From Selaginella moellendorffii (Eukaryota; Plantae; Lycopodiophyta), in NCBI RefSeq assembly GCF_000143415.4, contig NW_003314313.1:266418-330417 (forward strand): a stretch of DNA of 64,000 bases. Direction: 5' to 3'. Of the stretch, positions 10,657 to 58,154 are shown piece after piece (the first letter of the stretch is position 1; each line of letters opens with the position of its first letter). The notes beneath the pieces were generated by a model. It searched no databases and was not told where the DNA came from. It worked only from the letters and a program-made list of their open reading frames with translations. The position numbers and the translations under genes are program-made.

Positions 10657-13067
10657 ATGATCATCGGAGCTGGATACGCTGCGCTCATCACTGGCGCTGT
10701 CTCTGGAATCGGTAAATTTCGTGTTGGATTTCGGCCGATCTTTTGTTCTTTGCGATGTCTAGGACGAGCGCTAGCGCTTGCGCTCGCTGAGAAGCGCTCG
10801 ATTTCGACTCTGGAAATGGCCTCGAGGCGCTCAATCTAGTGAAGGAAGTCCATTCCAGGCTCGGCATCTCGGGCACGGCGGCCATTTTTGTCCAGTGCGA
10901 TGTTACAAAACCTGGTATGCTCACAAACACACACACACACACACACTGCTTATTTTTATGTCATGCACTAATACTTCGCTGTTTTAGAGGAACTTTCTCT
11001 CGCGTTTGTTTTAGAGGAACTTTCTCTCGTGTTTGTGCTCGAGCTCATCCATGACTATAGAGTTTAAAGTCTCTTTTGCTGGGCTTTACAGGTCAAAGCA
11101 ATGCGAGCTCGGGGACAACCGGGAGTGATCATAAACCTTTCATCTGCGTCGGGATTATATCCGGCTCCCTTGATGCCAATCTACCCGGAAGTAAAGGTAA
11201 AAGCTCAGAAGGTGGTCTCATTTCATTTTGCTGTCGAAACACTCCATTTTTCTAGGTGGTGTTGTGTTGTTTACGAGATCGCTATCAAGACTTCGCAGAG
11301 AAAAAATACGAGTGAACGCGCTCTGTCCCGAGGTCAGTGCACAGTTTACAATTTTTTTTCGATTTTGACATACATGCCGGGTTTCCAGTTTATCGAGACT
11401 GCAATGACGAAGTCTCTGGATAGGAAAATAATAGACATAACCGGAGGTTATCTATCAATGGACAAGCTTATTCACGGTAAGGTGTATATTTAACTATTCA
11501 GAAGCAACGTCGTGTTTTTTTATTCCTCAGGGGCCTTTCAGCTCATTGAAGATGATAGCAAAGGAGGTGTTTGTCTTTGGATAACAAACAGGCGTGGTCC
11601 GGAGTATTGGCCTTCAGAAGAAGAGGAAAACAAGTTCCTGGTTCACGGTAGAAGAAAAAAAATCCCTCAAGAATCGAAAGAACTTCCGTCTCCAAATCTG
11701 CCTACGTCCTTTGATCAACTGTAAGTGATTGTTTATATTTTGATCCTGTTTCTACTATTGCTGTTTTCAGGATGGTTCATAAGCTGAGCAGCGATTTTCG
11801 TGTTGCCACGAAAATCGTCACGGTACCACTAAGACTTCCTGTGAGAGAAGGCCACGTACTGATAAAGAACTACTATGCTGGTGTGAATGCAAGTGATGTA
11901 AGTAGGCGTGCAACTCCTTTTTATCTTACATATCCTTATGTTTCAGGTGAACTATAGCTCTGGACGTTATTTTGCAAATGAGAAAGAAGCATTGTCGCGC
12001 CTTCCTTTTGTTGCTGGCTTTGAGGTAAAGTTTTATTAGATTTCTATGTAAGTTTTCCTTTTGTGCGCTTTGCAGTCCGTTGGAGTGGTTGCAAGCATTG
12101 GACCTGGCGTAGCTCTAGATGAGATTACGCTAGGATCTGCTGTTGCAACCTTTAGCTACGGGGGTTTTACAGAATACTCACAGGTTTAGCAAAAGAAAAG
12201 TGAAATTTTTGTTCTAACTAGATTTGCAGGTTCCTGCAAAGTCTGTCATTCCTGTTCCTTCCCCGACTCCTGAAGTTGTGGCTATACTTGTCTCTGGACT
12301 GACGGCTTCTCTTGGTTTGCAAGAGGTAGTGGTGCTAGCTCTGTAATCTATAACCCTTGCTCACTGGTCTTTATGCGGAAGACATAAAAACGGTATGTAA
12401 GAAGTGCTATGGAGTATCTAACAGATGAACAGGTTTTGAAGAAAGAATATCCACGTGGAGTAGACCTTGTCTACGAATCTGTTGGCGGGACGATGTTTGA
12501 CACATGCCTGAATGCTCTTGCAACTTTTGGACGTCTGATCGTCATAAGAATGATATCGCAGGTGTGTTAATGTTGTATTTTAGCCGCCATATGAAAACGC
12601 TTTCTTGCAGTATCAAGGAGAAGGTGGATGGCAACCGAGAAACTATCCTGGACTTTGCGAGAAGTTGCTGTGGAAATCGCAAACCATCGTAAGCAAGTGC
12701 TGCCATAATGCTGCTTTGCTAACAAGGTTATCCAGGTTGGATTCTACTTAATGCATCACAATAAGCTTTGGAAAGAACACGTTGCGAAACTTCATAGCCT
12801 ACACAGTCGGGGGAAGCTAAAGGTATCGTGCTTATCTGCTCTTTGAGCGAGAATACAACCTACTTCTCTGCAGATTGCAGTTGATCCAACACCCTTTACT
12901 GGCCTAAGCTCTGCATGTGATGCTGTGGAGTACCTTCATTCTGGAAAAAGTGTTGGCAAGGTATTGCGATTTGATTGAAATGATGCGCACTAATTTCATG
13001 ACTTTGTCTCCAGGTTATCATAAGAATTTCCATGGATGCTCCAGCGCTTCAAATCTCACGTTTGTGA
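10657..13067 (+). pseudogene. SDR + MDR (zinc-ADH-like quinone oxidoreductase) fusion gene with C-terminal PTS1 (SRL), disrupted
   Basis: ITGAVSGIG, VQCDVT, IINLSSASGLY, YAGVNASD, YESVGG, HSGKSVGK and terminal ISRL*. A frameshifting deletion follows ALAEK (~10795); the SDR NNAG segment and the MDR nucleotide-binding exons appear to be missing; a short tandem duplication lies at 10981-11035. Confidence 0.8.
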
Positions 13068-13250: not shown

Positions 13251-15153
13251 ATGCAGGCGATGGATCTCTGGCTTCCTTCCATTGCAGTGGCCTTGATCAT
13301 CGTCCTTATCTCGTGCATTCTCAACTTCAACAGCTGGTTTTATGCTCCGAAGCTTAGACCTGGATCGCCACCATTGCCACCAGGTTCGCTTGGTTGGCCT
13401 GTTTTCGGAAACATGGGAGATTTCTTACAGGCCTTCAAGTCAAGCAATCCGGAGTCCTTTGTAGGGGGTTTCATTTCCAAGTAAGTGTTAATTTCCTTTT
13501 TCTTTTCAAAACCTCTGCTTTTCTTGCAGGTATGGATGTGGAGGCCTGTATAAAGCGTTTTTGTTCAGGCAGCCCACCATTCTGGCCACATCAGCGGAAG
13601 TATGTAAGACCGTGCTTTGTAACCATGATGTTTTTGAGATCGGATGGCCAGAGCGAGTGGTGAAAGAGCTTCTGGGACTGAAGGTTCTCTCGGCAGTGAC
13701 GGGCGACGATCATTTGAAGCTCAGCAAACTGGTCAAGCCGGCTTTAAGTTCACCGAAAGCAATTCAGCATCAAATGCCTTGCATTGAAGAAAACGTGAAG
13801 AAATTGCTAGACGAATGGGCGGATCGAGGCAACATCGTCTTTCTAGATGAAGCAAGAATGGTGAGCGAGCCTCAAAACAATCCGCAAAATTCTAACCTGC
13901 TTTTTGTTTCTGTCGTTTCTGTAGTTTACGTTGAAAACTATTCACGAGATTCTAGTAGGAGAGGATACAGGGATTGATTTCAAACAGGTGTCTGGGCTGT
14001 TTCACACCATGAACAAGGGTCTGCGTGCTTTACCACTCAACTTTCCTGGCACTGCTTACAGTAACGCTGTCAAGGTTCTTCTTCTTCTTCTTCTTCTTCT
14101 TTTTTCTCCGTCTTAAGTTTGTGCTTGGTTCGTCCAGGCACGCGCAACGTTGGCAAATGACTTCTGGCGAATATTCTACGAAAGAAAGGAAAGCAAGAAG
14201 AGAGGAGGAGATACTTTGTCCATGCTGCTGGACGCCACAGACGAGGGCGGTCAACCTCTAGAAGATGATCAAATCGTGGATTTGATCATGTCTTTTATGA
14301 ACGGAGGGCACGAATCCACGGCACATCTCGTCACCTGGTTGGCCATCCTCCTGAAAGAGCACCCTGCTGTTTACCAAAGACTCAAGGTATCCATTTCGCT
14401 TTCAGTATGAATATTTTCTTAGTGTTTTTTGCAGGCTGAACAAGATGAAATCGCGCTCAAGAAAATGCCTGGCGAAAGCCTTACACTAGCTGACATGAGG
14501 AGCATGACTTACATGTCTAGAGTATGCTAAAGTTTCTTCGAGTTCTTTATGACCGCTGACTTTCTGTGAAGGTGATTGATGAGACCCTGAGGCTGATTAA
14601 CATTTCCCCGTTTGTCTTTCGGAAAGTTCTCAGCGACGTGCAGCTAAACGGTGAGTAAACTTCTAGAGAGCTTTTGAAAAGGATATATGCTTGACCAACG
14701 AATTCACCAGGCTACACAATCCCGAGAGGATGGTTCGTAGAGGCGTGGCTACGACAAGTACACATGGATCCCCTCGTGCACAAGAACCCGAGAGAGTTTG
14801 ATCCCGACCGCTGGATTGTAAGCGTTTTGTTTCTTTGGTCGTATTCCCTACGTTAACCGGAAGTTTCTGTGTCAAGAACGAGAAGCCTCAGCCTCATACG
14901 TACGTTGCCTTCGGCTTGGGCAATCGAAAGTTTCCCGGAAGCAACCTCTCCAAGATCCAGAGCAGCATCATCATCCACCATCTCATCACGAAATACAAGT
15001 AAGCACAACGTTTTCCATCTTTTGCATTGGAAGGCTCACACACACCAACACAGCTGGGAGCCATTGAATCCACACTACAAGCTCGTATATCTCCCACACC
15101 CAAGGCCCGCCGACCACTATCCCGTCAAGATCACGAAGCGAGCACTTGTCTAG
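13251..15153 (+). CDS. Cytochrome P450, CYP85 clan, CYP88/ent-kaurenoic acid oxidase-like; heme Cys replaced by Phe
   Basis: Nine exons splice in frame. Motifs [15 protein letters not shown] (I-helix), ETLR and PDRW; the heme motif reads [10 protein letters not shown] (TTT at 14931-14933). Confidence 0.85.
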
Positions 15154-15493
15154 GATCTCTCTTCACGCCTTGGAGAAAGTAAGCACCATTTCTCACAGAG
15201 ACTGTGATTTGGCTGTAAGAATCTATGTCCCTGGAACTAACCGCCAGATTTGTTGGTATTACCAGGCCATCTTCACTCCGCGCGAGGACCGCCATGGCAT
15301 AGTAGAGCTGGTTCTTGGGATAAGTTAGCTTCTCGCTACGGGCCTGCGCCTCCAGAGTACACAACAAGCCTCCGTACACCTCTCGATTCTTCTCCATTAG
15401 CTGGATCGTACTGCCAGTGTTGTTGACAAAGGTAACTCCTCGAATTTGCGCTAATCTCTCGTCGCTGCTCCAGCACCCCAGCGAATTTCCCAT
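15131..15493 (-). CDS. Small intronless 120-aa protein of unknown function; N-terminal MGNSLGC (possible acylation)
   Basis: Clean ATG ORF with globular composition and a TATA-like tataaa about 50 bp upstream. Its stop codon lies inside the last P450 exon. Confidence 0.55.
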   Translation of the reverse strand: MGNSLGCWSSDERLAQIRGVTFVNNTGSTIQLMEKNREVYGGLLCTLEAQARSEKLTYPKNQLYYAMAVLARSEDGLVIPTNLAVSSRDIDSYSQITVSVRNGAYFLQGVKRDPRQVLAS

Positions 15494-15751: not shown

Positions 15752-17520
15752 TCACAGGTTCTCGACGGGAAATCCAACCACTGGAGAAACTCTCTTTGCA
15801 ATGTCCCGGAGTTCCTCAACTTCGTCGGCTGTTAAGTTCCATCCGAGAGCCCCCGCGATTTCAATCGCCTGATAAGTGGAGATGCCTCTTTACTTAGCCA
15901 CGAAAAAACCATATGAATTTTTTTTTTTTTTCTTTTAGTACCTGTTGTGCCGACTTGGCACCTGGAATGGGAACCACATTCTTCTGTGCGACCAGCCAAT
16001 TGAGAGCTACCTGGAAAAGTTAAACATCGAGAAAACTTTGCGTAAGTTATGTGACTTTCAAGGCTCCACCAGAAAAAAAAACCTGTGTGGATGTCTTGTC
16101 GTACTTTTCTCCTAGTTGCTTGAGCTTGATTAGCACAGGAGAGAGCTGAGGAAGTTTCAAAAAGTTCAAAACTACAAACAAAAAAAAGAATAGTAGCTAT
16201 TACCTTTGACAGGAACCCCGCATTGTAGATTCCTCCCCTGGGTCCTTTTGGTGGATTTGATGGCGTGTATTTCCCGCTCAAGATACCTGTGAGATGTTTG
16301 AGAATCCTCATCTTTTTATTTCATGTGCCTGGAAGTTACCTTGAGCGATCGGAGAATAAGCTATGAGTGTGATTCCCAGGTCGTCACAGGCTTGTTTGAC
16401 GCTGTTTTCCTCTGGTTTTCGATAGATCAAGCTGTAGTTTACTTGATTCGATGCCAGGACAACTCCTCGTCTCTTCAGCTGGTCGTGAGACCTCTTAAGC
16501 CTGTCCACTGGAAGCAAACCAAGGATTTACATTGGTTTCCAAAGTAGAAATGCCACACCTTTGTAATTGGAAACTCCTACTGCTTTTACGAGTCCTTGCT
16601 CCACAGCGTCACCAAGACCGTCGAGATATCCTGTTACAAATACAACGTAGCAAAGAAACTAGAAAACGAGTAAAAATGAAAAAAAGAAAGAAAGAAGACA
16701 CCACCTTCATTTCCCCATATGCCTGGCCTGCCATTTAATTTAGACGTGAAGTTTAGAGCGTCTTTCAAGTTAAAAGTGCCATACCAGTGGAGCTGATATA
16801 AATCGACAGACGAAAGATTGAGACGCTCCAGAGAATCCTTGAGTGCTTTGACAACGCTCCCTCGGCCAAACCTCCATGGCAGTGCAGCAAACTTCGTTGC
16901 CACTACAATCTTAGATTGTTCTTCTTGTTTGATCTCCTTGATAAACCTGCGGGAAGAAAGAGGAAAACTTGAAAAATAGAAGACAAGCTTGTTTACCTTC
17001 CTAGAAGTGTTTCAGAATTTACAGCACCAGATGCAAACTGGAGTTGGACAAGTTAGATGGTTTAGCAGTAAAGTTCTAGCTCGGGACAGAGAATTCCACC
17101 TTGGAGCCATAGACCTCTGGACAAACGAAAAAAGAGAATTGAACACACCATTGTGATCAACCAGCAAAATTGCTCACCTGCAGTATCAAAGAAATCCAAA
17201 CCACTTTCCACGCTCGCGGTGAATGCCTCTTTTGCATCTCTCAACTTTCTATCTGTAATTGAAGAGTGATAATCCACACAACTCGGCATGAAGAAAGAAG
17301 AATCACTACCATTCCAAGTGCCTTCATTCCAGTAACTTGTATCGCCCCACGACCAAGCCCCAATCCCGACAGGAGAAACCTCTACACTGGATTTTCCTAG
17401 CCTTACCTTCTGGGTTGGTGTTGTCACAGTGATACAAGCACTGATCGAAGAGCCATGCCGCCTTGTTTTGATCCGGGCAGCTGGCAGCCATAAGAGAGAA
17501 TGTGGTGGCGATAGTGCCAT
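15752..17520 (-). CDS. Plastid-targeted aldo-keto reductase (pyridoxal-reductase-like family)
   Basis: Transit-like N-terminus, then [64 protein letters not shown] and terminal FPVENL*. The exons splice in frame. Confidence 0.9.
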
Positions 17521-18547
17521 GGCTCAAAAATCCCGCTTTAACCTTAAACCCTATGCATATCGTGACAGATTTTCCTTGTACTGCTGCAATGGCTTAGAAT
17601 GTTTTTTGTCACAACCAACCGATTATAGAGTAACAGATTTAAAGCCTCAAGATTAGAAATATTTAATTCATCTTTATTAGTTTGTATGTCTTAACAAAAT
17701 CTCAAAGGCAATAAAGAATAATGCTATTGCCAAAAACAACTTAGCAAAGACAGCCTTTAATGAGCTTGAAGCCTCTAATCACAACCAGAATATATGTAAA
17801 GATGAAGGCCACTCTCTTTGAGCTTATGAGTTTCCCTCATCTTTCAGGAACTCCTGCAATAAGGTAGCAAGCATGATGGTAATATAGAGGGATTGGCAAG
17901 TCTGTGAAATAAGCATATAAATGAAGATTAATAATAAAACAATATGAGTGCATTAGATATGGAATACAAAAATGTGCATATTAATTAATTTAAAAACCTT
18001 AGTTTATATACAAAAGCAAGTGGTCTGGATTGAAAATAATTTAGCAATTATCAAAATCCCACTATACTATATTAATATATAGCCATACATTTAGACCTCA
18101 CATCATCCTTTCCTCTTGAAATTAGAAGATAGTTAAAGTTCTCTAATGGACAAGTCAAAATCTAGAGGAATATAAGGAGGATGCATCACTAAACTTGTAG
18201 GTGGTGTCGATCCTTTTATAGGAAGTGTTTTAGCCATTGCATATGCATAATTTTTAGAGGATTAGTCTATTGAACATCATAAACTTTGTAATCTAACTTG
18301 CCATAACACCCGATGTGGTCTTTTCTATTAAGTAATAAACCTTTTACACAAACCACATACTATAAAATTGGGAAAACAAATTAACATTAAGTCATTCATT
18401 TTATACTCTATAGATGGATGATAATGGGAGTTGTAACACTGTTGTTATCCCACTTATACGTGGCCCAAGTGTTTGGTAGACTCTACTTAGATTAGTGGAA
18501 GAATGCTTGTCAAATATTAATCCAAAACTTAGCATTAACAGCTCGTG

Positions 18548-19998: not shown

Positions 19999-22721
19999 TG
20001 TAGCACACATGGTTTTCACCCTTTATTCTATGGTGATTTACCATAGAACAACCACAAAACAAAACCTAAACCCCCCATGTGCCACATGTTACATGCCATA
20101 TATCTAAAGGACAATGGTGTGAAACCTGAGTTTTAGAACCTTGGGCCACTAAAAGAAAGAATGGAGCTAAACTCCCAAACATGAAGCCAAAGAGTAATGG
20201 CATTGAAGCACGGAACGACTCCCGAGTATATATCCCAAGCAACGAAGGGACAGGAGCATGAAGGGACTTGGAATAGTTCTAAAGTATCCAGCATCCCAAT
20301 GCCAGAACCAAGATGCAAAATGGAGCCAAATGGAGTCTAGCGTTATTTTAATATATCGGTTGCCTAATGCAAGGATATGGGTACTCCACCAACAAGCATG
20401 TTATAAAACTTGGACTTAGACCCAAACCAAACGCAAAACAAAGACAGGTACACAAGTAAAGCTAAACTATACTTTAAGTTAGTCAAGCCATGCTTGACTT
20501 ACCCACTATCCCTATTATATGTTTTCAATCCCCCACACCCCCCCCCCCCAAGCCTTGAGGAACACATGCTTTGGGCTTTCACCCCAAGCCTCTTTTAATA
20601 CCAGGGGTTAGTCTTTGGAACCTCGAAACTTACTAAATATGGAATATCCTTATATTGTGAACTTGGTCACAGGACAAACACCATTGTGTTCAAAACAATC
20701 TCTATATTCCGTTGATATGCCAAATTAGTAAATCTAGACACTTTCCATAAATAGCATTTGGGACCGGAATAAGACTAACACAAAGGGCATGATAGCGAGA
20801 GTGTTTGGCAGACACAATAAGCTATCATTTAACGAATATTAAGGGACCAAGCTCAATATTGCAGAGGTTCCAAACACTAGCAAGTGCAAGTCAACAAATG
20901 ATTTTCTCTAACCAAGTCAAGTATACTTGACTAATAACACTTAAGAATTCCCTCCTTATGCTCATTTGGTTAAGTGCACATACGAAGACCAGTTTCTCAA
21001 CTACCTTAGGTGGAGACTGATAACGGGTCTAGCAATACCAACCTCCTGCCGTCGTGGCAATGAGGAAAGAATATCCAAAAGGATAGCTGATAAGTAACTT
21101 TCGATACCCAAAGTTGCATTTGCAACACTCTCCCCCTCTTAAGGAAAATCAACGTCCTCGTCAATGCATACTTGAGTCTAGACAACTACCAAGGAAACAA
21201 CCCTAGAAAAATTTCACAGTGATCACACTATGTGAAAAATGCACCAACTTAAATGAGTTAAAGTAACCTTTTTGTCTAACACGGATGTGCTACCAACTCA
21301 AACACTTTCCAGCCATCGCCGACAAGGAAATGACCAATGGAGTTAGCCACCTTTACTACTCTGGGTGTCACCCAGCTTACAAAAGTGTGATACACCCTTA
21401 CTTGCAAGGACATAGAGAGAGAAGTTAGAGGCCCGAACCTTCATGAGCAAAGAAACCAAATCCGTTGGTAAGGTTTAGATAAACTACTATAAATAGGTAG
21501 TTAAAGTTGTTTACATGATCACGCCCTTTCAAGGGAATAAAGAACATCGACAGAGAGGCAGGTGGTATAACCAGTCTACAATAGCTACCCCATGACTAAA
21601 GATTTCACTATGCACATGAAGTGTCAAAGCCAATCTGCCTATACTGGCTTAAATTCAAAGATCAATAGATGGATAATATCAAAGTCATAGACAATGATAT
21701 CTTACAGACTGAATTATCAGTAAATAAATCTTAAATTAGAACACAAAAGTATTCCAAATAAGTTATCATCTGATAAACCAGTATTAGAGTATAAGAACCA
21801 CCAAGATCACTATAGTTGGAAAATTATAGGATTCACCATCTAACAAATTTCAATAGCAAATATATTATCAAGTAAACTCAATAAGAAAACTTAACTATTG
21901 AAAATTGTAAATAGTATGCTAAACAACTTACCAAAGATAACTCAAAAAGCACAAAGTATTATTGACTGGCAAGCAAGATGCTTGCGAATGTATCACAAAA
22001 GTAATAACATTCAATTTATTAAACCTAACTAGAGCAAAAATCAACAGAATAGAGTGAATGCCGCAAAACCAACAAATACTCATTCATGCCAACTATCATG
22101 CTAGCCAATTTGAATAGATCCTGGTCAACAATACCAAGGAACCAAAGTTGCTCAAGCAAGTGTCAGCAACATCCTACTGATATCTCAAACCCAAGATACT
22201 AATCCAAAACAAATCACAAAGAATATATGATAATGTGAAAAGCCATAAACTATCAAAGAGAACAACTAACCATCATGAAAGATCATCAATCATCCCATCA
22301 ATAAAAAAATGTATAATCATTGTCAAAGAAAGAATTTACCATCCCGAAGAATGGCAAATCTTTCTATATTAATAACAATCAAGCAAAACCTTTGACAAGG
22401 ATAATCAACTATTATAAATGATATTCAATCATCACCAATGATTACTAGATGCAAAAGCCAACTTCAACATTGAAAGTAATGAGCCAAAATACCTTCTCTA
22501 ACAACTTTTAACAAATGGAATAATAAGCATAAAAAACTTAAAGAACCAAAAAGCTCGAAGAAGCCTATAGCTATGTCTTGTCCAACAATGTTTACAAGTC
22601 TTACATAACTAATTTTAATGCTAAAGAAGAAATCATGGTACCACCTATAATATCCTTCTCAACACATCGAGAAGTTAAACTTTATAATGCAAAACTAATG
22701 AAGAGCATATCTACATCAATC

Positions 22722-34500: not shown

Positions 34501-34864
34501 AGAGATAAATTTTAAAATATACAATTATTAGTAATATATGAAGGCATAAACATGCTAAAGCAAATAGATAATAGATGTGACCAATTAAAATGTGCATATA
34601 TGATAAAATTTGGTCGTTTGGATTGTATATTTGTAAGTGATTAATATCAATTACATGGGGAATCCCCTCCAAAAATGCTTGATTTTGCTTTATATATAGA
34701 AAATAGAATAGAATATTTAATTATTCTACGTTGAGATTAAAAATTAAAATCATGGATAATTTACTTAATATATAGAAAATTAAATATAATATTTAACATA
34801 ATTTGCAAAGTTTGAATTTTTTTTTTTCCAAATATACATATTAATATATTTTAACATTCTTCCT

Positions 34865-36193
34865 TTAGCCAGCTTGGAAACTTAGGCCATCTTTCATGTC
34901 CTGTACCAAAGTCTCGAATAACTTGTCATCCCTGGTAGTTGTGGACTCCAGTGACTTCATAACATGCTCCAGCCCCCCATGGCAAGCCTTAGGAAGCAGT
35001 TCCCACCATTTCTCCCAACTCGGGCCATTCACCGGCAGCAATCCCGCAGATTTGATGAAGCTACAGTTTTCCGTGTGTCGGGCAATAAATGCCATAGCTG
35101 CCGTCCTGTTACCAAATACCACCCTCGTCTTCAACTTGACATCAAACTGCTCTTTGGCCTTCCGGGCAAAACCCAAGTTCCCATTCTTGGACCCCTTCAC
35201 CATGTCGGCAACTAGCCCCACAAAATTGGCACATGTGAAAAACACCTGCCCATACACTGAAACGTTGGGGAGCCACAAGATGCTAGCTATGGAGTATGCA
35301 TAGAGCATCACACCCGATAAGAGCAGCGCTAGCTTTCCAGGGAGTTTATCTTCTTGCTTGAGGCTCCGTTGGAAGAGTCCCTGAACCGAAGCCTCAGTGC
35401 CTTCGACAATGTGGAATGTGTCACTGTTCAAACTGTAAACGAGGCAGTCTCCCCTCTCTGGCGCACCCGCAGCAATACTTGGGTCGTCATATTTGAACAC
35501 GAGCATCGACTGTGTTGTCCACACGGCAAGTGCCATCCCGAGAGCACCCAGTGCAATGAGGCCTCCTATGAACCACTCCATGGCAACGCAAGCCATGCAG
35601 ACGATCCCTGCCGTGAGAACAAGTGGCAGCCAGCCCAATAGGAGGCCGTCTATACACTTCCCCTTGAGCTGAGCTCGAGCACCACTTGTAGTGCCTGTCA
35701 GCGATAAGACCAAGACCTCGACACTTCGACTAGCGTTTCTACCTTGTATTTTCGGTGGAGTGGCACGCTTCCACAGCCGCTTGTGCTCACTGATAAGACT
35801 GGCGCCCACAGTGTTGAGCACGGGGCATTTGGTGTTGGAATGGAGGCCCAAGTACTGGAAGCCTTGAGGGCATTCCACGTGAGGAGCAGGAGAGTTGCCA
35901 AGGGCCAATAGCTGCGCAAAACGCAGGCCAGTCATCTGGAGGAAAGATGTAGCGAGTGAGAGGCTTCCTGGGCCTACATGGCCTGTGATGCTGAAGGCAT
36001 CGTTCATAGATGAGAATGCGAAGCTCTTCCTTGCAGATTCGGTGCCCAGTGCAGAGATTAGACCCACCAGATCCAGCTTCTTTTGATCGATAGACTTGAG
36101 ATTATCCGCTGATCCGGCCTCGACTGCCGGAAATTGTGAGAGGAGCAGCGTGGTGACTTGAAGGACAAGAGATGAGGCCCACTTCCGCAGCAT
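34865..36193 (-). CDS. Uncharacterised multi-pass membrane protein, paralog A (frame open up to 36319)
   Basis: Intronless ORF in an AT-rich context with a signal-like N-terminus and several hydrophobic helices; extensive identity with 42628-44067 (KLDLxGL, NDAFSxTGHVGPGSLSLAT, CPVLNTVGAS, KGSKNGNLG). Confidence 0.85.
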   Translation of the reverse strand: MLRKWASSLVLQVTTLLLSQFPAVEAGSADNLKSIDQKKLDLVGLISALGTESARKSFAFSSMNDAFSITGHVGPGSLSLATSFLQMTGLRFAQLLALGNSPAPHVECPQGFQYLGLHSNTKCPVLNTVGASLISEHKRLWKRATPPKIQGRNASRSVEVLVLSLTGTTSGARAQLKGKCIDGLLLGWLPLVLTAGIVCMACVAMEWFIGGLIALGALGMALAVWTTQSMLVFKYDDPSIAAGAPERGDCLVYSLNSDTFHIVEGTEASVQGLFQRSLKQEDKLPGKLALLLSGVMLYAYSIASILWLPNVSVYGQVFFTCANFVGLVADMVKGSKNGNLGFARKAKEQFDVKLKTRVVFGNRTAAMAFIARHTENCSFIKSAGLLPVNGPSWEKWWELLPKACHGGLEHVMKSLESTTTRDDKLFETLVQDMKDGLSFQAG

Positions 36194-36519
36194 GGTGCTT
36201 GATTTCTCACAACCCCAGCCCCGCGCACTTGACACGGTTAGTTTGCAGAATCCAGCCCCCCTTGTTTTTCCAATGCCTCCCTGTAGCCAGAATGAGCTAG
36301 AATTTGCAAATTCTTGCACGGATTCAAGCTGCTCGTTGCATTCTATCTGTGCTGGAGCTAAGAAAGCTCAAGTACACCACTTGGATTTCCATTAGGAAGT
36401 GGATGAAATTGGGGCAAAGGGGGGATGGCAAAGACCTCTCTTTGACACAAACTTGATTTCGCTTTCTCTGTCCCCATGGCTATGTTCATGTGTGACTCAC
36501 ATTGACATCGTTGCCTTTA

Positions 36520-36991
36520 GGTTGCCTTTAGGCCCACCAGGTGTGGAAGATATCTATTTCATTAAGCCACTATATGAGCTTTGTATGATATATATCACTG
36601 TAGGCCATGGTGGCTGTTGCTGGTGATGATTTGGAAATGCATCATAGGGAGGAGGACAATCAATTTCATGTTCCCCTTGTATGATGATCACATTGGATTC
36701 CTTCCTGACTGTTCTTATCCTCCGCAGCCTCATCTTTTTTAACAGAATTTCCAGGAGACTTCAACAAATCCATGTATTCTTGCAAGATTTCTCAAATTTC
36801 TCAGCTTGATCAAAATTTCCTGTATGATGATATCCATTTTCTGGACAGCACCTGCAAATTACAAGAGCCCTTTAAAATCACTTTCCATCCACTAAAATAT
36901 ATCCCATCAGGTGTCCTTGTGAATAATCCTTCGCTGCTAGTGTGGCACTTACTGCACGTTTTCATACTCTTCACAAACCGAATCGAAAGGA
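36520..36991 (+). repeat. ~480-bp direct repeat, copy 1 (copy 2 at 44640-45127)
   Basis: Colinear match from taggcccaccaggtgtg to gaaaggag. Confidence 0.9.
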
Positions 36992-37094
36992 GTATCACCA
37001 TGGATGCAATGTTTCCTCACTACCAAATCTATAATATTAGCAAGTAATAATAAGCATAACACAATAAATTTAATACTCAATTACTTAATTAAAT

Positions 37095-39183
37095 TCACCT
37101 AACTGTGGACTGAACCTTAGGAAGGTGATCGTAATCAATCTTTCCACTAGCTTTCATCTCCCTGTATTGTGGAAGAGCTCTGAGATGGCCAATTTTCCGC
37201 AACTTGTTGTGGCTGTCTCCCAAACATATCATGAAGAGCAAAACTTTCTCCACAACGGGGCTGTTGTTCAAGTAACGTGTCTCAAGAGAGGTTCCCAACA
37301 GCAGCAGCGAGACATTGGAAGTGCATCCGTTTGCAAAGTCCTGGTTCGGCACAAGGAGCCAACCTCGCAGGTAGTGCGATGGGTAGACATAGTTGTTCTT
37401 ACCACATGCCAGCAAATGTGGCCAGAAGGCTCGTCCCTGAAACTCGTCACCCAGCTCTTGAGATGAGTGGAAGGGCAATGCATGGCCCTGGTCCTTCATG
37501 TCGAGCACCCAAACCTCATCAGAAGCAGCTCTGAAGCAGTTATCGTGCTTCGGGTTCGAGTTGCAGCACGAGCAACAGCCTTTCCCATTTATCCTGTTCG
37601 TCACGTGTGTACAACTCCCACGGTGCTCCTCAAGTGGCAGAAGCCTTGCAGATATGAAACCGCATGTCAATGTGAGAGAGCCATCGACGCCCACGCTCAC
37701 AGATTCCACCATGCTTTTGAAGTCCACCATGTTGCTCAGACCCTCGATGGTGTCACCTTGAACAATATGACGAAGTACCTCGTTACGAGGAAGGCTCTTT
37801 CGGAAGATGGGCATCCAAGTTGGCTCTGGGCTTCGCTCCTCTGTCGAATTTATGAGTTTAGTCACAGCTTCTAGCATCACTTGAACAATATAGCGAAGCA
37901 CCTTAAGGCTGTTCCGGAAGATGGGTGTCCAAGTTGGCTCTGGGCTTCGCTCCTCTGTCGAATTTATGAGTTTGGGCCCAGCTACAGCTACTAGCATCTT
38001 GATTAGATCGTCAAGGTTGCAGCTAACCATCCCCCGTGTCAGCTCCACCAATTGCTGATTGAGTGTCCTGCCAACTTCGATTCGTTGGACACCATCTTCA
38101 CCTGTTACCCCGAGCAAACCGAGCATGCAAAGCGCCCGATCCTCTTCTAATTTGCAATCTCGATCAGCAATCTCCTTGACAAGGCCAACAGTGCCACCAT
38201 GGCAGGTGAGCCCAAGGCGGGTACCAAAGTCAAAGATATCACTGCTTTCCCCGCTGATTATGAACGCCAAGGGAATGTAGGCATTTCTGTCCATGAAGTA
38301 GAGATTCTCGCAAGATGTTCGAGCTAAGCGACCACGGGTGCACTTGTAGTCCGACTGCTGCAATGCCTTCCAAAAGTTGGCTTCGTCTTCCTGAGCAGAA
38401 CGTTGTTCTTGTTCATATGGTCCTGAGGTACTACCCCAAGACCAGCCATTGCTGCCTTTACACGCACACGTCTTCTCAACATGTATCTTCTTGACAAAGT
38501 TCACGACACTCTTCAACTGCGACTGATCCATCTCGACTATGAAGGTGAGATTTTGGGGTAGTATAAACTCCTGCAGAGTCCAAGCTCTAGAGAACCATAC
38601 CGGAGGCTGGCCGTCGTCAGCCACTGCCTTGAAACCAGATCCAAGGCCATGAAGACTAACGTAGCAACCCAGTGTAAGCGAGTAGAATTCTCCCATTCGC
38701 AATATCTCTCTCTCCTTTTCCTTCTTATCGAGCTGGTTGATGCACAGTGTGTCAAGCCAAACCAGGTCCACTCCATCCTCCTGGAGCACTTCGAGAAACT
38801 GGATCAAGCCTTTGTATCCCTTGTTACGTTGCAGGCCAGCATACTTTAGCGCTTCTTCGTAGCTGATCCTGCTCTGCCTTCTTTCCATTACCTGGGCCAC
38901 GTCCTTAGACAAGTCCTCGATGTCGCAGGTCCACCTGTGAGAAACTATGTGAAATTCCCAACTGTTCACAGCGCTAAAAATAACGCCTCCAGTAGCACGG
39001 CTGCACTCGGTTGTGCCCTTGACATTTATCACCCGCAGTGGAAACGCTTGAAGCTTGAGGTTCTTGATTTTCTGAAATGCAGAACCTTGGATGGAACACT
39101 AAGTCAGCAACAAACAAAAACCTTAAGAAACTTGAGTTACCTTCGAACTTGGTGAAGTCTGCCTTTGGGATCAAAGTTGACAT
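37095..39183 (-). CDS. HET (heterokaryon incompatibility) domain protein, ~677 aa, 2 exons
   Basis: HET motifs PLRVINV, IVSHRW, VWLDTLCINQ, EILRMGEFY, WFSRAWTLQE and RDCKLEEDRALCMLGLLGV. Predicted exon 1 39183-39141, 55-nt intron 39140-39086 and exon 2 39085-37095 give one frame. Confidence 0.88.
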
Positions 39184-40314
39184 TGAATCTGCTTAAATAT
39201 ACTGAGCTTGAAATCTAGCACTACTCAATTAGCCATGGCAGTGCCTGTGAAGGAATCCACTGTCGTATTGTCATTTGATCAAAATATAAACCTTACCTTA
39301 CTAGCTTAAGGAGATATGCCGCATGTACCTGCTGCGGGTAATGGATCAAAACGAGCTACATCATAAAGCAAATGCACGGAACCTTCTTGCACCGCTGCAG
39401 CAGTCCCCACGAAATGCTTGAGAACTGGTTCTGCCCCAAAACGCACAGTAACCCAAGTTAGATATCTCTCGTTTGACGCTTGAGGGTTTGGGATTTTCTA
39501 AAATGCAGAGGAACACAATGCTAATTTCGGAAACTTCGGTTACCTTAGAGCTTGGTGAAGTTGGACATTCTGCCCCATTGTTCTGAAACTTCTGATCCAA
39601 GCCCTTAAATACTAAAACCTAGCACTAGTTACAGGCACCTGTAAAGCTGAAGCAATGGTCCTTCAAGATGCCACAATTAAATTGCTTGTGAACCAAGTAG
39701 ACTAGATTCTCTTTAACGTCCCGATCTACCCACATCTGGTAGAATTTTATTGTAACAATTACTATCAACCACTGATTCACCATGCAATACATGAACGAAA
39801 CAGTTACTATCGGCCCGTTTAATAATGAATGGGGCTGGCGTGAAGCTTAATGAGATAAATCCAGAATGGCTGGAGCACACTGAAGAGTTCTAAAGATCCC
39901 AGCCTAGCTGATGACTTGGCACATATCTTTAGAGCGAACAGGGATGCATGGAGATATGAGGGAATTAGTATCCCGCTGGACGTCTAATTTATGAATTGAA
40001 GTTTAGTTATTTTCATGGGACTCAGTCATGTCCTTCCAAATGAATGCAGAAACAAGACAGTCCCCAAATCGGCAACCGTGATCATCGGCGTGCATGCACG
40101 TGATGGAAGTTGGAAGCTCTGAATTTGACTCCGACGACCATTGTTGCCCATGGTCCACCCTTCCAACGGTCCACAGGCTATCAAATCCGATGGTCTCCTA
40201 CTACTCGTAAATCCAGATCAAAGTTTTCTTCAGGTTCAAGCATCTCTGTAGCACTCATGGATGCCAGAGTGGATACCACATACAAGTTACGGACTGGAGC
40301 ATAAAGTTGGGGGA

Positions 40315-40790
40315 TCAATTCGCACATGAGCACCTTCGGTCTTCAAACACATGGCATGCTTTTGTCCTTGCAGACGATCCTCCACCGCTCCAGTAAATGT
40401 ATGCACATTTGCAGATTCTTCACAAACCGAAGCCTGTGTTTTCGCCAAGGCAAAAGCCAGAGCCAGCTTTCCATAATGGCCGTATTCTTTCTCGCACCTG
40501 TTCTCTTCGATGCTTCATCATAGCCACGCTCTTGCCTTTTTCAGGACAGGTCTTCAAGCTTCGCACCTATTGATCCATCGTCCACCTTTTGTACCTCATC
40601 ACTGCTTGACACACCATTACTGCATGGCTTCCAGATGCTAGAACTAGAGATTCAAACGCCAGCTGTCCGATTTCGAGATTGTTCCACTTCTGTCATGCAG
40701 CTAAGAAGGTTTTCCATATTACCAGCGATGGTTTATGAGGCATACTTCCCAGCATCTCCAAAGCTTTGTCCAGTTGGTTGGCTCGGAAGC
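40315..40790 (-). pseudogene. PPR E-DYW domain relic
   Basis: RANQLDKALEMLGSMPHKPSLVIWKTFLAA*QKWNNLEIG, then decayed KLALAFAL, LRFVKNLQMC and HVFED…CSC segments. Confidence 0.65.
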
Positions 40791-42204
40791 ATAGAGGTTG
40801 ATATTTAGAGCAACCAGTCAATAATTTAAATGCTTAAGTTTACCTCTGTTCATTAATTAAATATGCTATTTTTAATATTATCATGAATGTTATTCGTTCT
40901 ATATTTTTAATTCAAATGCACTACCCTTGCAACCACTTGGAATAAAAAAGAATGAATCTCTATTAGTTGAGTGATGGTCATAATAAGTACAAATAATTGA
41001 ATATTATATTTATACCCCATGTTCTCTCAAAGTTTTAAAACTAAAACTTTTCTCCTATAAAGTTTTAAAAAATAAAAGTCTCAATTTCCAATGCCTAGAA
41101 TAGTCAAGAAGATATTACTCTAGAAATAAAAAAAAACATTCAAACTAAATTGAGATGAAATAAAATATATATGAATGAACTTATTTTAATAATTAAAATT
41201 AAAATTATCATTAATAATTTTAAATAATTATTTAGAACATCTATATTGCTCTATTTGTTAATTCATGCATTCACAAAAAATAAATTTAAAAGAGGAAAAT
41301 ATTTCTAGTAAAAGTCTCATTGATTTTCTTTAAAATAAAAATAGAGCTAATCTGATTATTTTGTTATTTATTTGAATTAAAATATGTGGTTTATCTTATG
41401 AATAAGAACAATATACTTGTAATTTTAAACTATAAACATATTTTTCCCAACAAATGAAAATTAAAAATATTCCTAAATATTTATTTAATTTAAGAATAAA
41501 CATTTAATTACAGTATATTAAATCTTTAAAAATTACTAAAACATTCTAGCTCATTAATTATAAAGCCTTAGGCCTCTATATTATTATGACTAAAACTATA
41601 AACATAAATGTAAATCTACATTTTTAATAAAGATCTCTCATTTTATTGACTTCAAAAGTGATTTTTCCATAAAGAAAGTGTAAAATTCTAATATAAATCT
41701 CATAATGTGAGTATAATCAACTAATATATTTTAAAACATTTTTACTGAAGAATGATAAAATGCCATTTTATCATACTTCATTTGGAGTTTCTTAAAATAG
41801 TATATATTAAATAGTAAAATAGATGATTTTATTAATAAAAGCTAATTTTTATAAATTTAATTCTTATTATTTCTTTTATATAGGTTATTCAATTGACCCA
41901 TTTGCAATATATGAAAGTAATACCAATCAATAATGCAATGAATGAAAGTAATATTTTGGGTATTTGGAAATTGATGAATCAACCAAACACTACAAGACAT
42001 TATTTTTATTGCTTTTATGTATTGCATTATTGATTGAGGACAAGATTGTTTTGGTTTATTAAATGGATTAAACTAAATAACATCAAGGTGAGAGAATCCT
42101 AAAACTGTTCCTCTTTTATGACTGTAAGAGGCATTTACTTATATAGACAATGAAAAGTCTAAATTGCACTAATGTAATAACCCAAATTAGCCAAGTTAGT
42201 TTAA

Positions 42205-42218
42205 TTTTTATATATATT

Positions 42219-42250
<32 letters not shown>

Positions 42251-42308
42251 TACATACATATATATACATATACATATACATATACATATATATATATACA
42301 CACACACT
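42205..42308. repeat. (TA)n/(TACA)n compound microsatellite
   Basis: Directly visible. Confidence 0.95.
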
Positions 42309-42627
42309 ATATGTAGAGACTTCACATTGGTTTTTCTTTTCTTTTTTCCTATTTTTCCTTCTTTTAATGGCAAGAGTGATTTCTAAATAAAAACAACTGC
42401 AATAAATTATATTAGTCAAAATATTTAATTTACCTAATATTTTAGAGCATTCAACTTTTAACTAAAAGATTTAAGTACATAAAATACTAAAGTGATTGTA
42501 CAATAAAATATCTACCAGATGTAACAGAATCTACTTCGTCCTATGGTCGGTTGGTCCGGATGTTAAAGAGAATCTAGTCTACTTGATTCACAAGCATTCA
42601 TTCTTGTCATTTAGTTGTTCGCAGGCA

Positions 42628-44067
42628 ATGGTGAAATGGACACTATATGTTCATATCACAATGGTGTTTTTGTTGCAGCAGTTTCTTAAGGTATGTGCAA
42701 ACGATCTAGCTGACCGTGTCCGGTCTAGCATCAAGACGAAGAAGCTTGACCTCATGGGCCTCGTCTCCACGCTAGGAACCACATCTGCAACAAGGAGCCT
42801 GGTATTCTCATCCACGAACGATGCATTCAGTGTCACAGGTCACGTTGGTCCAGGAAGCTTGTCCCTTGCCACAACCTTGCTCCAAATGACTGGCTTTCGT
42901 GTAGGACAGTTGTTGTCCCCGGCTGCCGAGTCTAACGCTCTTAGCATGAAATGCCCCAACGGGTTGCGCTACATTGGCTTGAGCTCTAGAACCCAATGCC
43001 CCGTCCTCAATACGGTGGGTGCCAGCATCGTGCGTGAGCACAAGCAGCTGTGGAATGAGCATGACGGCGTGGCTAACGATAAGCCGGTGGGAAGAGATGC
43101 TGGTCGACGCATGCAGGTGCTGGTCCTATCAACGGGCAACATGGGGACTCATGCTCAGGTCTTGCTCAAGGGGACGGCATTAGACTGCCTTCTCCTGGGT
43201 TGGATGCCATTGCTACTCAGCTTGGGAGTCGTTTGTGTTGCTTGTGCCAGTGGGGAATGGGTCGCTGGCGCTCTTATCGGGCTAGGAACTCTGGGGATGG
43301 CACTTTCGGTGATGGTATTGAGGATCTCCTTCGTGTTCAAATATGCAGAGCCCAAAGTTGCTGACGGTGCTCCTAAGGGAGATTGCCTCGTCGTGGATGA
43401 CACGGATACTGAAACTTTGCACATTGTCATGGGTACGGAAAGCTTCATACAGGCCCTCTTCCAGCGCAGGCTGGAGCAGGAGGAAACTAAAATGGGCAGA
43501 GTGGGGCTGTTGTTCGCAGGGCTCATGCTCTACGCTTACTCAATCGCCAGTGTCTTGTGGCTTCCAAACGTGTCCCTCTTCGGCCAAATAATTTTCACAG
43601 CTGCCAATGCTCTTGGTCTGCTCGCGGACATGTTCAAAGGCTCCAAGAATGGCAACCTAGGCCTGGCTCGCAAGGCACGAGAGCAGTTTCAGTTGGCCTT
43701 GAGCGAGAGGGTGGTATTCGGGAGCCGGACCGCGGCCGTCGCTTTTGTTGCAAAGCATGCTGAAGACTGCAGTGTGCTCAAGTCCCTGCTGCCCACGCAA
43801 GGGCCAGTATGGGAGAAATGGTGGGTGCTGCTGCATCGTTACAAGCACAATATAATCAGTCCTGACGATGCGGCCTGTAACATCGATGACGACCCTCTGC
43901 TTCAAAAACTTGTGAAGGACATGGAGTATGGATTGAACTATCAGTCATATAAGATCCAAATGAATGTAGAAACAAGATCCTTTGACAGTCTACAAATTGG
44001 CAACCGTGATCATCGCATGCATGTGATGGAAGATGGAAGTTGGCAAGCTAGCAATTTGATTCCATGA
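42628..44067 (+). CDS. Uncharacterised multi-pass membrane protein, paralog B
   Basis: Intronless ORF starting MVKWTLYVHITMVFLL; paralog of 34865-36193; motifs GAPKGDCLV, LWLPNVSLFGQIIF, FGSRTAAVAF and LLPTQGPVWEKWW. Confidence 0.87.
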   Translation: MVKWTLYVHITMVFLLQQFLKVCANDLADRVRSSIKTKKLDLMGLVSTLGTTSATRSLVFSSTNDAFSVTGHVGPGSLSLATTLLQMTGFRVGQLLSPAAESNALSMKCPNGLRYIGLSSRTQCPVLNTVGASIVREHKQLWNEHDGVANDKPVGRDAGRRMQVLVLSTGNMGTHAQVLLKGTALDCLLLGWMPLLLSLGVVCVACASGEWVAGALIGLGTLGMALSVMVLRISFVFKYAEPKVADGAPKGDCLVVDDTDTETLHIVMGTESFIQALFQRRLEQEETKMGRVGLLFAGLMLYAYSIASVLWLPNVSLFGQIIFTAANALGLLADMFKGSKNGNLGLARKAREQFQLALSERVVFGSRTAAVAFVAKHAEDCSVLKSLLPTQGPVWEKWWVLLHRYKHNIISPDDAACNIDDDPLLQKLVKDMEYGLNYQSYKIQMNVETRSFDSLQIGNRDHRMHVMEDGSWQASNLIP

Positions 44068-44639: not shown

Positions 44640-45127
44640 GGTTGTCTTTAGGCCCACCAGGTGTGCAAGATATCTATTCCATTCCTTTTGATGTAAGCCA
44701 CTATATGAGCTTTGTATGATATGTATCACTATAGGCTATGGTGGCTATTGCTGGTGATGATTTGGAAATGCATCATAGGGCGGAGGACAATCAGTTTCAT
44801 GTTCCCCTTGTATGATGATCACATTGGATTCCTTCCTAACTGTTCTTATCCTTTGGCCTCATCTTTTCTAACAGAATTTCCAGGAGACTTTAACAAATCC
44901 ATGTATTCTTGCCAAATTTCTCAAATTTCTCAGTTCGATCAGTATCAAAATTTCCTGTATGATGATGTCCATTTTCTGGACAGCACCTGCAAATTACAAG
45001 AACCCTTGAAAATCACTTTCCATCCACTAAAACACATCCCATTAGGTGTTCTTGCAAATGATCCTTTGCTGCTAGTGTGGCACTTACTGCACGTTTCCAT
45101 ATTCTTTACAAATTGAATTGAAAGGAG
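44640..45127 (+). repeat. ~480-bp direct repeat, copy 2, abutting the resumed LTR
   Basis: Matches 36520-36991 and ends where family-A LTR homology resumes. Confidence 0.9.
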
Positions 45128-46063
45128 CAAAGGGATAGGACACGGAGCGACTTGGAATAGTCCTAAAGTATCTAGCATCCCAATGTCAGGACCAACACAC
45201 AAAATGGAGTTAAGTGGAGTTTGACATTATTTCACCATACTAGTGGTTTAACGTAAGGATATGGGTATTCCACCAACTAATATAGTATGGAATTTGACCT
45301 TAGACCTAAGCCAGATGCAGAACAAGAACAGGTATGCAAGTAAAAGCTAGACTATGCCTCAGGTTGGCTAGCCATGCCTAACCTACCCACTATCCCTACT
45401 ATACATTTGGAACCCCCAACACATGCTTTGGGCTTTCACCCCAAGCCTTCTTTAGTACCAAGAGTTACTCTCTGGGACAAGCTCAAAACTTACTGAATAT
45501 GGAATGTCCTTATATTGCGAATTTGGTCATATTGTGTTCAAAATAATCTTTACATTCTGTAGATATGTCAAACCAGCAAATTTAAACACTTTCCATATAT
45601 AACATTTGGAAACGGAATGAAACTAACACAAAAGGCATGATAATGAGGGTGTTTGGCAGACACGGTAAGCTATCATTTAACGAATATTGAGGGACTAAGC
45701 TCAATATCGCAAGGGTTCCAACACTAGCAAGTGCAAGTCAGCAAATGAGTTTCTCTAACCAGGTCAAATATATTTAACTAATAGCACTTAGGAATTCCGT
45801 CCTTATGCTCATCTGGTCAAGTGTATATATGAAAATTAGTTTCTCAACTAGTTTAGATGAAGACTAATAACAAGTCTAACAATACTGACTTCTTGCTATC
45901 GTGGTAATAAAGAAAAAATATCCAAAAGGACAGGCAATAAATAATTTTTGATATCCAAAGTTACATTTGCAACATACACCTTAGCATCCTTAGGATGTCT
46001 AGAGACACCTTTTTAAAATATCGTGGTAAGGAAGTCTTAGAGGATAGTAGGATTTAGTGATCA

Positions 46064-56853: not shown

Positions 56854-58154
56854 CTAGCAGATTTTTGCCTTGGAGAAATCCATTTCCGGGTGCTGCCACA
56901 GCCAAAACCAAAATGAGAAAAGAAATCCCAAAACGCAAAACAGAAAAGCTTTCACCTGTGCCATGAACTTCTTGAGCATCTCTTGCTTTTGCTGGTCTTC
57001 GGAGCTTGGCAATCCCATCGCCTTCTGCCGCTGGTCGTACTGCAAAACGAGGGAGACGAAGTAAGCCAAGCAGCGAACAAAGAGAGAAATGAAATGAAAT
57101 ACCATCATCTTCTCCACGGTCTGCCGAGTCTCTGCGTCCAAATCCCCCAGCTTGCTGTTCTCCGGCTCAACCTTTTGAGTGTCAATCTCTGGCTCGCCTT
57201 TCACAACGTTTTTCCACCACTCCATCCTGTTCGTCTTGGTGAGGAGGATAGAAAGGAACTTCTCCGCTTCCTTCTTTCCATCGCCAGCATCTAGATTGAG
57301 AGCAAGAAAATCATCCAACTCTTGATAAACAACCAGCAACACATACCAATGCTCCAGAAGCAGTCGTCCACCTTGACGGATGCATAGAGATCGCCCTGAT
57401 AACAGAAAAAGCAACAGTGTGAGAGAATAGGAAAGAGAATCCCTTCACTCACCTCGAGAATTGGCGGCTGACCCTTGAGCCCAGCTTTCAGATGGTTCTT
57501 CTTAATGTCACAGACGATATCTCGCGCCTTGATCTCTTTTGCAACGGGGATTTGCACCGTCAGCTCACTTAATGTTTGCGTCCACGAATACTTTTCGAGA
57601 TCGGCACCATTTCCAGCATTAATCTCTGCAAGAACACAAATATTGTAAGCGGGAAGAAAAACCCAAGAACCGAAAGGATCAAGCAAAGAACCAACTAAAG
57701 CAAAGAACAAAATAAACTTACTCAATCCGGTAGAGTCAGAACTCTCCACTTCCTTGACTTCGTTCTTGGTTTCCTGGACAGCCGCCGACGCCGATTGCTT
57801 GCCACTTGATCCACCGCCGCTGGCCTTATGCTTGTGCTCGCTCTCGAAATCCCGCGACGGCGCCGCCTCGGGCACCGGCACCGCATTCTTCTTCTTGCCA
57901 TCGACGCGCCGCCTCTTGGCGCTAGACACGATCTCCGACAGCTGCCTCTCGAAGTATTCGTCGGGGAAGGCGGCCGAGCGGCGCGTGAGAAAGCCGATTA
58001 CCGTTTTGAGCAGCTCCAGCGGCTGATCATTGTGCTCCTTGAGCAGCGCCTCCAAAATCTTGTCGTGAGCAGCATTGCCGGAGTCCGACGGAGGAGCCGC
58101 GGCGACGGGCTTGGGGACCTCGGCCTCCTCCTCTACCTCAGAGATGATCGCCAT
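56854..58154 (-). CDS. BOB1: BOBBER-like NudC/CS-domain chaperone, 6 exons
   Basis: [67 protein letters not shown] and [11 protein letters not shown]. Confidence 0.93.

Follow-up and report, generated by a model that had tools for sequence, protein, structure and literature searches.

A HET-domain gene flanked by paralogous membrane-protein genes in Selaginella moellendorffii, and recurrence of the pairing in a moss and in giant-virus-like loci

The window analyzed here, a 64-kb stretch of the lycophyte Selaginella moellendorffii genome, contains at 34865-44067 a gene encoding a HET-domain protein (HET) flanked by two paralogous genes for a membrane protein of an unnamed family (mem), termed memA and memB. 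An earlier note on this DNA had proposed a two-component system and had named lack of recurrent linkage elsewhere as one of the results that would refute it; HET and mem were found linked again in Ceratodon purpureus, a moss, as well as on a metagenome contig of moss type and at nine virus-like loci. Overall, these data are probably best explained by a functional, conserved HET-mem module that has travelled as a block, of which the Selaginella genes would be the lycophyte copy of an old two-gene arrangement. The two proteins would work together, the most likely arrangement being that mem holds, senses for, or executes the output of the HET/TIR-like death domain at the membrane, and the pair may act in cell death or in non-self conflict. 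Transfer among fungi, the giant viruses of these fungi and an early land plant would have involved the module as one block, with vertical inheritance in mosses and lycophytes thereafter.

Open reading frame (ORF) calling in 34865-44067 gave three long intact ORFs corresponding to memA, HET and memB, which are genuine intact nuclear genes of S. moellendorffii; the earlier description of three intact genes here was confirmed by the ORFs, by the Pfam HET match and by the paralogy of memA and memB (54% identity over 451 residues in BLASTP, E 3e-153). The memA coding sequence (CDS) lies on the minus strand at 34865-36193 (ORF 34865-36319, ATG at 36193) and is intron-free, encoding 442 aa (P0001). 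HET, also on the minus strand, has a first coding exon of 45 nt at 39139-39183 (15 codons, ATG 39183-39181), a 55-nt GT..AG intron at 39084-39138 seen in three RNA-seq runs and a transcript contig, and a second coding exon at 37095-39083 (662 codons plus stop; ORF 37095-39032) that includes the HET domain and the C-terminal region. The short first exon is required for the full 677-aa product, P0005, which is identical to the NCBI S. moellendorffii protein of LOC9635605 on a 1.45-Mb scaffold, and excision of intron 1 reproduced its N-terminus MSTLIPKADFTKFEG|SAFQ. A further GT..AG intron of 52 nt, supported by reads and contig, lies in the 5' untranslated region (UTR) at 39244-39295, so that the 0-1 introns per gene noted earlier hold for memA, which is colinear with its transcript, and for HET, with one coding intron in addition to the one in the 5' UTR. 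The memB CDS is on the plus strand at 42628-44067 (479 aa; ORF 42496-44067, likely ATG 42628). GC content is 0.48-0.54 in the three genes and 0.19-0.27 in the AT-rich stretches at 33-35 kb and 41-42 kb. No further HET or mem copies were detected within the 64-kb window by custom HET and mem profiles, which also served for the viral loci. Two single-base differences were seen in one RNA assembly, one haplotype having been examined.

Among plants, the clearest parallel was C. purpureus (L013), where HET at 10001-12097 is separated by 2 kb from the first of two mem genes, located at 14107-15414 (+) and 16644-17957 (-) and detected by tblastn with E values of 1e-35 and 1e-31. The Ceratodon HET is a full-length orthologue of the Selaginella HET, sharing 28-29% identity. 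In a 39-kb metagenome contig (L015), mem lies 7 kb from a gene for an 896-aa HET protein; this mem nests with Ceratodon mem1 in the mem tree, which identifies the contig as moss. The memA/memB pair was 100% supported, as was the group of Ceratodon mem1/mem2 with the moss-like copy, each being lineage-specific, so that, together with two copies at the viral locus L019, three separate mem duplications are apparent; mem stayed beside HET after each of them in Selaginella, Ceratodon and viruses. Upstream of the Ceratodon HET, at L013:310-9232, there are uncalled ORFs of 209-488 aa matching no Pfam family, which may be spurious in GC-rich DNA or may be more unannotated genes of the same island.

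In metagenomes, mem homologues were found on gene-dense, intron-free contigs of a lineage resembling nucleocytoplasmic large DNA viruses (NCLDV), seven of these virus-like loci having been added by a metagenome scan. The contigs encode DNA polymerase B (PF00136, E 8e-82), a fused capping enzyme/methyltransferase, a ResIII/SNF2-type helicase, RPB1 split in two genes, RPB2, RPB5, a D5 primase-helicase, uracil-DNA glycosylase (UDG) and several HET proteins. In seven of the nine distinct loci (L019, L023, L027, L028, L030, L031 and L032) mem is directly beside HET, while the distance is 1.5 kb in L033 and 6 kb in L021; L019 has two convergent mem paralogues. The polymerase, helicase, capping enzyme or RPB1 of L027, L030, L031 and L032 is 45-81% identical to that of the first contigs, which indicates a single viral lineage and loci that are not independent of one another. 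No named virus was matched by the viral polymerase, and a search of IMG/VR with one viral mem protein and with the viral-clade alignment gave no match. Assemblies of Mortierella, Linnemannia, Podila, Bifiguratus and Ramaria contain relatives of the polymerase at 51-82% identity, on contigs of 10-71 kb, which associates the lineage with Mortierellomycota and other soil fungi. Likewise, P0053 and P0055 from Entomortierella beljakovae and P0172, P0194, P0196, P0203 and P0207 from fungal assemblies are mem or polymerase B proteins that fall inside the viral lineage or beside it; their contigs, of 3.8-71 kb, are either co-assembled viruses or endogenous copies.

The virus lineage matches the published "fundsalphaviruses" by gene set, split RPB1 and hosts. 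As in that group, the contigs with HET and mem have polymerase B, D5, an SNF2-type helicase, an S-adenosylmethionine (SAM) methyltransferase/capping enzyme, RPB2, RPB5 and the split RPB1, and polymerase relatives occur in Mortierella and Bifiguratus assemblies; for viruses of this type there are contigs of 87-95 kb. NCLDV-like insertions in Physcomitrella have been placed within the fundsalphavirus group (Gong, Zhang & Han 2020, PMC7017919) and the split-RPB1 signature was described by Maumus et al. 2014 (PMC4083422), where the Selaginella entries are an exoribonuclease family and EFJ10148 only. Neither HET nor a membrane partner is mentioned in PMC7017919 or PMC4083422, and a full-text literature search combining "HET domain" with "giant virus" returned nothing relevant. 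The Selaginella locus differs from a fundsalphavirus-type insertion in that it has no nearby core viral gene (window ORFs of at least 100 aa gave no match at E 1e-5 to core genes of the mem-bearing viruses), HET is spliced, and memA and HET are expressed; a viral insertion at this site was ruled out on these grounds.

Parts of the memA-HET stretch are contained in ~20 transcriptome-sized runs from 10 studies. The region 34750-40700 was mapped with three stranded RNA-seq runs and one assembly, 12% of each run being read, and the read depths given here refer to that fraction. In every read pair the first mate was on the plus strand, which indicates minus-strand transcripts of memA and HET. Reads covered memA over ~34750-36540 at a depth of 1-5, and a 1392-nt transcript contig was colinear with it over 34859-36250. 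HET showed a read depth of 0.5-1.8 with transcript contigs spanning 37151-39083, and its transcript extends to at least 39412, with reads to about 39720; splicing of both its introns was visible in the reads as well as in a contig from run X1. The interval 36541-37137 was free of reads, so that memA and HET are transcribed separately. Expression, which the earlier note had singled out for checking, is thereby established for memA and HET, with correct splicing of the latter. Sequence words from memB were present in four runs from two studies, including 69% of those sampled in run X1; as the X1 contigs are spliced, this run is RNA-derived and its share of memB words is evidence, from this run alone, that memB may be transcribed too. 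The dN/dS values were 0.26-0.33 for the Ceratodon mem pair and about 0.19 for Selaginella memA/memB, the latter with saturated dS, showing purifying selection on the plant mem copies.

The assignment of the central gene to the HET family, made earlier from the letters alone, was correct: the product matched Pfam PF06985 with an E value of 8.1e-11 and 42.9 bits against a curated cut-off of 22.5, over profile positions 3-83 of 146. The segments FHIVSHRW, LVWLDTLCINQ and WFSRAWTLQE are invariant or near-invariant across plant orthologues, and the blocks H-x-I/V-S-H-x-W, W-x-D-x-L-C-I-N-Q and W-F-S-R-x-W-T-L-Q-E are kept in these orthologues, which are conserved over their full length. HET could be aligned over its full length with the Adiantum and Ceratodon proteins, the C-terminal region being conserved in both moss and fern. 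Within the HET CDS, an in-frame tandem duplication at 37757-37998 (-), with two units of ~120 nt that are 80-91% identical, doubles the peptide KLINSTEERSPEPTW(T/M)PIFR at a conserved "SWAP" motif; in the alignment it is absent from the moss and fern orthologues and is therefore Selaginella-specific. The HET domain is TIR-like and sufficient for regulated cell death in Podospora, its enzymatic activity being listed as "ND" (PMC12881547).

The mem core comprises ~420 aa with an N-terminal helix of the form LDxxGxxxLxGG, two transmembrane hairpins and the motifs G-x-E…Q, N-R-T-x-A and L-L-P…W, and the family profile matched memA and memB with E values of 1e-111 and 1.8e-115, respectively. In both proteins a pair of helical hairpins stands out by its strong hydrophobicity (Kyte-Doolittle above 2), and the positions of the hairpins are conserved, the AlphaFold model and hydropathy placing them in memA at ~179-228 and 283-334; the same segments are hydrophobic in every member examined, whether plant, viral or fungal. 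The view that HET is flanked by paralogous membrane proteins is thus upheld by their 54% identity and shared hairpins, and mem is predicted to be a four-pass membrane protein of an unnamed family. The memA model (pLDDT 89.6, pTM 0.83, from a 51-sequence alignment) has an N-terminal helical/beta domain, a hairpin, a beta-rich insert, the second hairpin and a helical C-terminal domain. No Pfam family was matched by memA or memB even at E<=1, in agreement with the previous statement that these proteins are not HET-C, and no match was obtained for mem with PADLOC or with a PDB sequence profile. The best Foldseek hit of the model in the PDB had an E value of 0.27 and was no relative. Among 48,161 chains compared with VIA-align, the best Z was 6.7, and a resemblance to connexins (Z 5.9-6.3) was rejected because these are generic helical bundles below a meaningful level; the predicted mem fold is without a solved relative.

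A profile search of 1.84 billion representatives gave 115 mem relatives at E<=1e-3, and a word-indexed search gave three only, all on transcript-like contigs of 1.6-2.4 kb. Named members belong to Physcomitrium patens (LOC112290774, P0155), the chytrid Geranomyces variabilis, Entomortierella beljakovae and Fomes fomentarius. The nearest ESM Atlas neighbors, whether sought by structure (TM score 0.53-0.60) or by features (83 of 100 matches), were Ascomycota proteins without annotation, in large clusters. No HET-mem fusion was found, 10 longer family members having been scanned with no Pfam domain in any. Selaginella-type mem proteins have ~40 extra N-terminal residues, missing from viral and fungal members, which are weakly hydrophobic; as judged from sequence, a signal peptide is not established for this stretch. 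Complex prediction for memA with HET residues 1-450, run without controls, gave a score of 0.00, which speaks neither for nor against binding.

Several observations weigh against a functional HET-mem module that moved as a block. The nine viral loci amount to roughly one independent instance of linkage, and chance adjacency is made likelier by the several copies of HET that these viruses carry (L019 and L027 have three per ~20 kb). The linkage is not universal: over a range of 10 kb, no HET was found around the Physcomitrium and Geranomyces mem genes, nor any mem around the Adiantum HET orthologue. The HETs beside mem in L015 and the viruses differ in subtype from the Selaginella/Ceratodon HET, and most members of the family live in Dikarya, whereas the linkage data cover plant, chytrid and viral loci. 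Expression of memA and HET is low. If the N-terminal stretch of Selaginella mem were a cleaved signal peptide, the soluble parts of the protein would face away from the cytosol, on the other side from where the HET protein is expected. The two-component system proposed earlier is supported in part, by recurrent linkage, intact ORFs, transcription and purifying selection; its sensor or pore and effector would be putative roles, as would a part in immunity or allorecognition, and carriage of the module by giant-virus-like genomes had not been foreseen in the note.

The same low expression, together with the position of the cluster in AT-rich, repeat-rich DNA and the solitary Physcomitrium mem and Adiantum HET, which indicate that each gene can persist by itself, would fit an arrival of HET and mem simply as neighbors in the donor, without functional coupling, each now acting solo or slowly decaying. 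Such a passive relic is considered unlikely in view of the intact ORFs, the correct splicing of HET, dN/dS well below 1 for both mem pairs and the independent duplication of mem in three lineages while still beside HET. Adjacency is also common to moss and lycophyte at only 27-29% protein identity, and neutral plant micro-synteny is usually far shorter-lived than the moss-lycophyte split. A selfish toxin-antidote or addiction pair, in which HET is the toxin and mem the antidote, or the reverse, would persist in viruses, in fungi and in repeat-rich plant DNA since its loss kills the cell, with no service to host immunity. It would account for the location of the pair next to core replication genes in viral genomes, where HET is multi-copy, and for the ~480-nt direct repeats that bracket HET and memB in Selaginella; such pairs typically combine tight two-gene linkage with variable orientation. 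This explanation also appears rather improbable, as there is no mobility signature (the bracketing repeats are without long terminal repeat (LTR) or terminal inverted repeat features and the interior is without transposase or reverse transcriptase), the plant clades look vertically inherited and there is a single locus in the window. Derivation of the cluster from a contaminating or misassembled fungus or virus could be suspected from gene families foreign to seed plants and from the island-like base composition, but it is exceedingly improbable given the location on a 1.45-Mb scaffold, the 52-55 nt GT-AG introns typical for Selaginella, the recovery of the sequence from ~20 runs, belonging to 10 studies, that carry the same organism label, and orthologues in chromosome-scale moss and fern assemblies.

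With respect to origin, a Maximum Likelihood (ML) tree of 49 mem sequences recovered four groups. The plant clade (support 99/98) divides into mosses and Selaginella-type sequences; the virus clade (100/100) includes the two Entomortierella proteins among its branches; another clade, of 15 members (100/100), is probably viral; and the fourth is a Fomes-type group (100/100). The plant sequences did not fall inside the viral or the fungal group and the tree, being unrooted, gives no indication of the donor. In the HET tree the plant proteins formed one clade (99). For HET and for mem alike, the sequence data are compatible with either a fungus or a virus as donor. The fungal origin assumed in the earlier note is retained as one option by approximately unbiased (AU) tests on HET, under which plants+fungi (p 0.086) and plants+viruses (p 0.095) both remain acceptable; the origins of HET and mem may be congruent or not. 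Direct transfer from fungus to plant, with the viruses having taken the module independently from their fungal hosts, is a tentative possibility of some weight, and concerns origin only. It agrees with the predominance of unannotated Ascomycota proteins among mem relatives by structure and features, with the named Fomes, Geranomyces and Entomortierella members, with the retention of plants+fungi by the AU test, and with the absence of viral core genes from the window and the plant loci. Physcomitrella HET genes have also been attributed to fungi (Yue et al. 2012, PMC3493653), as have the moss genes of Sun et al. 2020, according to the summary in PMC7911284. Plant HETs were closer to Dikarya HETs in BLAST (E 1e-15) than to viral HETs (E 1e-3), but the fungal HETs compared were pre-selected as best matches and the viral ones were not. 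Against direct transfer, the ML tree places plant HETs on the viral side, albeit weakly (87), plants+viruses are equally kept by the AU test, and plant mem scores far better with the virus/chytrid group (E 1e-32 to 1e-20) than with the Fomes-type group (E 1e-10 or worse). In addition, the same viral lineage is already known inside a moss genome (PMC7017919), and viruses are the non-plant loci in which HET-mem adjacency was found.

Apart from the fundsalphaviruses, comparison with known systems places the conserved HET-mem module among three kinds of precedent. In Neurospora crassa, het-c/pin-c and het-6/un-24 each consist of a HET-domain gene tightly linked to a partner with which it shows non-allelic interaction. 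The Selaginella locus resembles het-c/pin-c in that a HET protein is encoded next to a non-HET partner, the het-c partner being membrane-associated, but differs in that mem is not HET-C, that its modelled fold is without a solved relative and that the host is a plant or virus and not a filamentous ascomycete. In bacteria, TIR-based two-gene defence systems with transmembrane effectors are known, e.g. Thoeris variants. By analogy, HET-mem likewise combines a TIR-like protein with an adjacent multi-pass membrane protein having soluble domains, while mem shows no sequence relationship to these systems (the PADLOC scan was empty) and its context is eukaryotic and viral. On this analogy it could be speculated that HET-mem is the eukaryotic/viral counterpart of the bacterial TIR and transmembrane-effector pairs and that giant viruses delivered it to early land plants, a proposal regarded as doubtful. 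HET would then make a nucleotide-derived signal or act on mem, mem would serve as executor or gate in the membrane, the giant viruses that soil fungi harbor would use the pair as weapon or counter-weapon, and plants would have domesticated it for cell-death control; if so, viruses would be the vehicle of the long-known "fungal" HET genes in bryophytes and lycophytes.

The third precedent is the moss "fungal regions" FR1/FR2 of Physcomitrium patens, in which, according to the summary of Sun et al. 2020 in PMC7911284, HET, HopQ1-like and unknown "CF" genes are clustered amid mobile elements; these regions were interpreted there as fungus-derived and possibly tied to antagonism with fungi. The Selaginella locus is similar in the clustering of HET with mem and in the surrounding repeats. 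As far as that summary describes it, CF fits mem, which is unannotated, has mostly hypothetical Ascomycota relatives and includes a Physcomitrium member; mem is probably the CF family and the moss fungal regions the same pairing, matched by description only. The two differ in that a HopQ1-like (nucleoside hydrolase) gene was not found among Selaginella window ORFs of at least 180 aa, shorter or spliced genes being outside the scope of this negative, and in that the host here is a lycophyte and the HET-mem pairing is conserved with Ceratodon and in giant-virus-like genomes. At viral L023:9037-9522 (-), a nucleoside 2-deoxyribosyltransferase-like gene (PF15891) lies directly upstream of mem (10001-11251), and nucleoside-modifying enzymes may be a third recurring companion of HET and mem.

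Going by the PMC7911284 summary, HET clustering on the plant side is partly known already. As far as searched, the new elements are the Selaginella instance, the specific HET-mem pairing conserved between moss and lycophyte, the confident fold model, and the presence of the pair in a giant-virus-like lineage tied to fungi and moss, of which no report was found in the literature. HET domains are among the most abundant fungal cell-death modules, and mem, adjacent to HET across moss, lycophyte and a viral lineage and small enough for co-expression, is a concrete candidate for their missing second component. The carriage of the plants' module by a soil-fungus giant-virus lineage known in a moss genome suggests a possible viral route for a textbook fungus-to-plant transfer, and extends the cargo known from fungus-associated giant viruses to genes of regulated cell death.

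Among the repeats of the window, the two direct copies of ~480 nt that bracket HET and memB are located at 36520-36992 (+), between memA and HET, and at 44640-45127 (+), downstream of memB, the second being 89% identical to the first; an LTR element as their source is not supported, since the copies lack LTR-like ends and the DNA that separates them is devoid of retroelement genes. The segment 43955-44214, covering the last ~110 nt of the memB CDS and 150 nt downstream, is 72% like 40035-40266 upstream of HET. The last ~40 residues of memB lie beyond the conserved end of the mem family and, given this resemblance, the tail seems repeat-derived. In the HET-memB spacer, a short ORF at 40693-40821 (-) resembles, by eye, a pentatricopeptide-repeat fragment (…ALEMLGSMPHKPSLVIWKTFLAA) and is probably a pseudogene piece, and a long low-complexity, imperfect TA-rich microsatellite occupies 42150-42420 just upstream of memB. 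A dispersed repeat of ~890 nt is present at 45122-45974 and 20237-21127 with 78% identity and is presumably a transposable element. The sole other Pfam match among window ORFs of at least 180 aa was a CS-domain ORF at 57291-58154 (-) (PF04969, E 7.7e-15).

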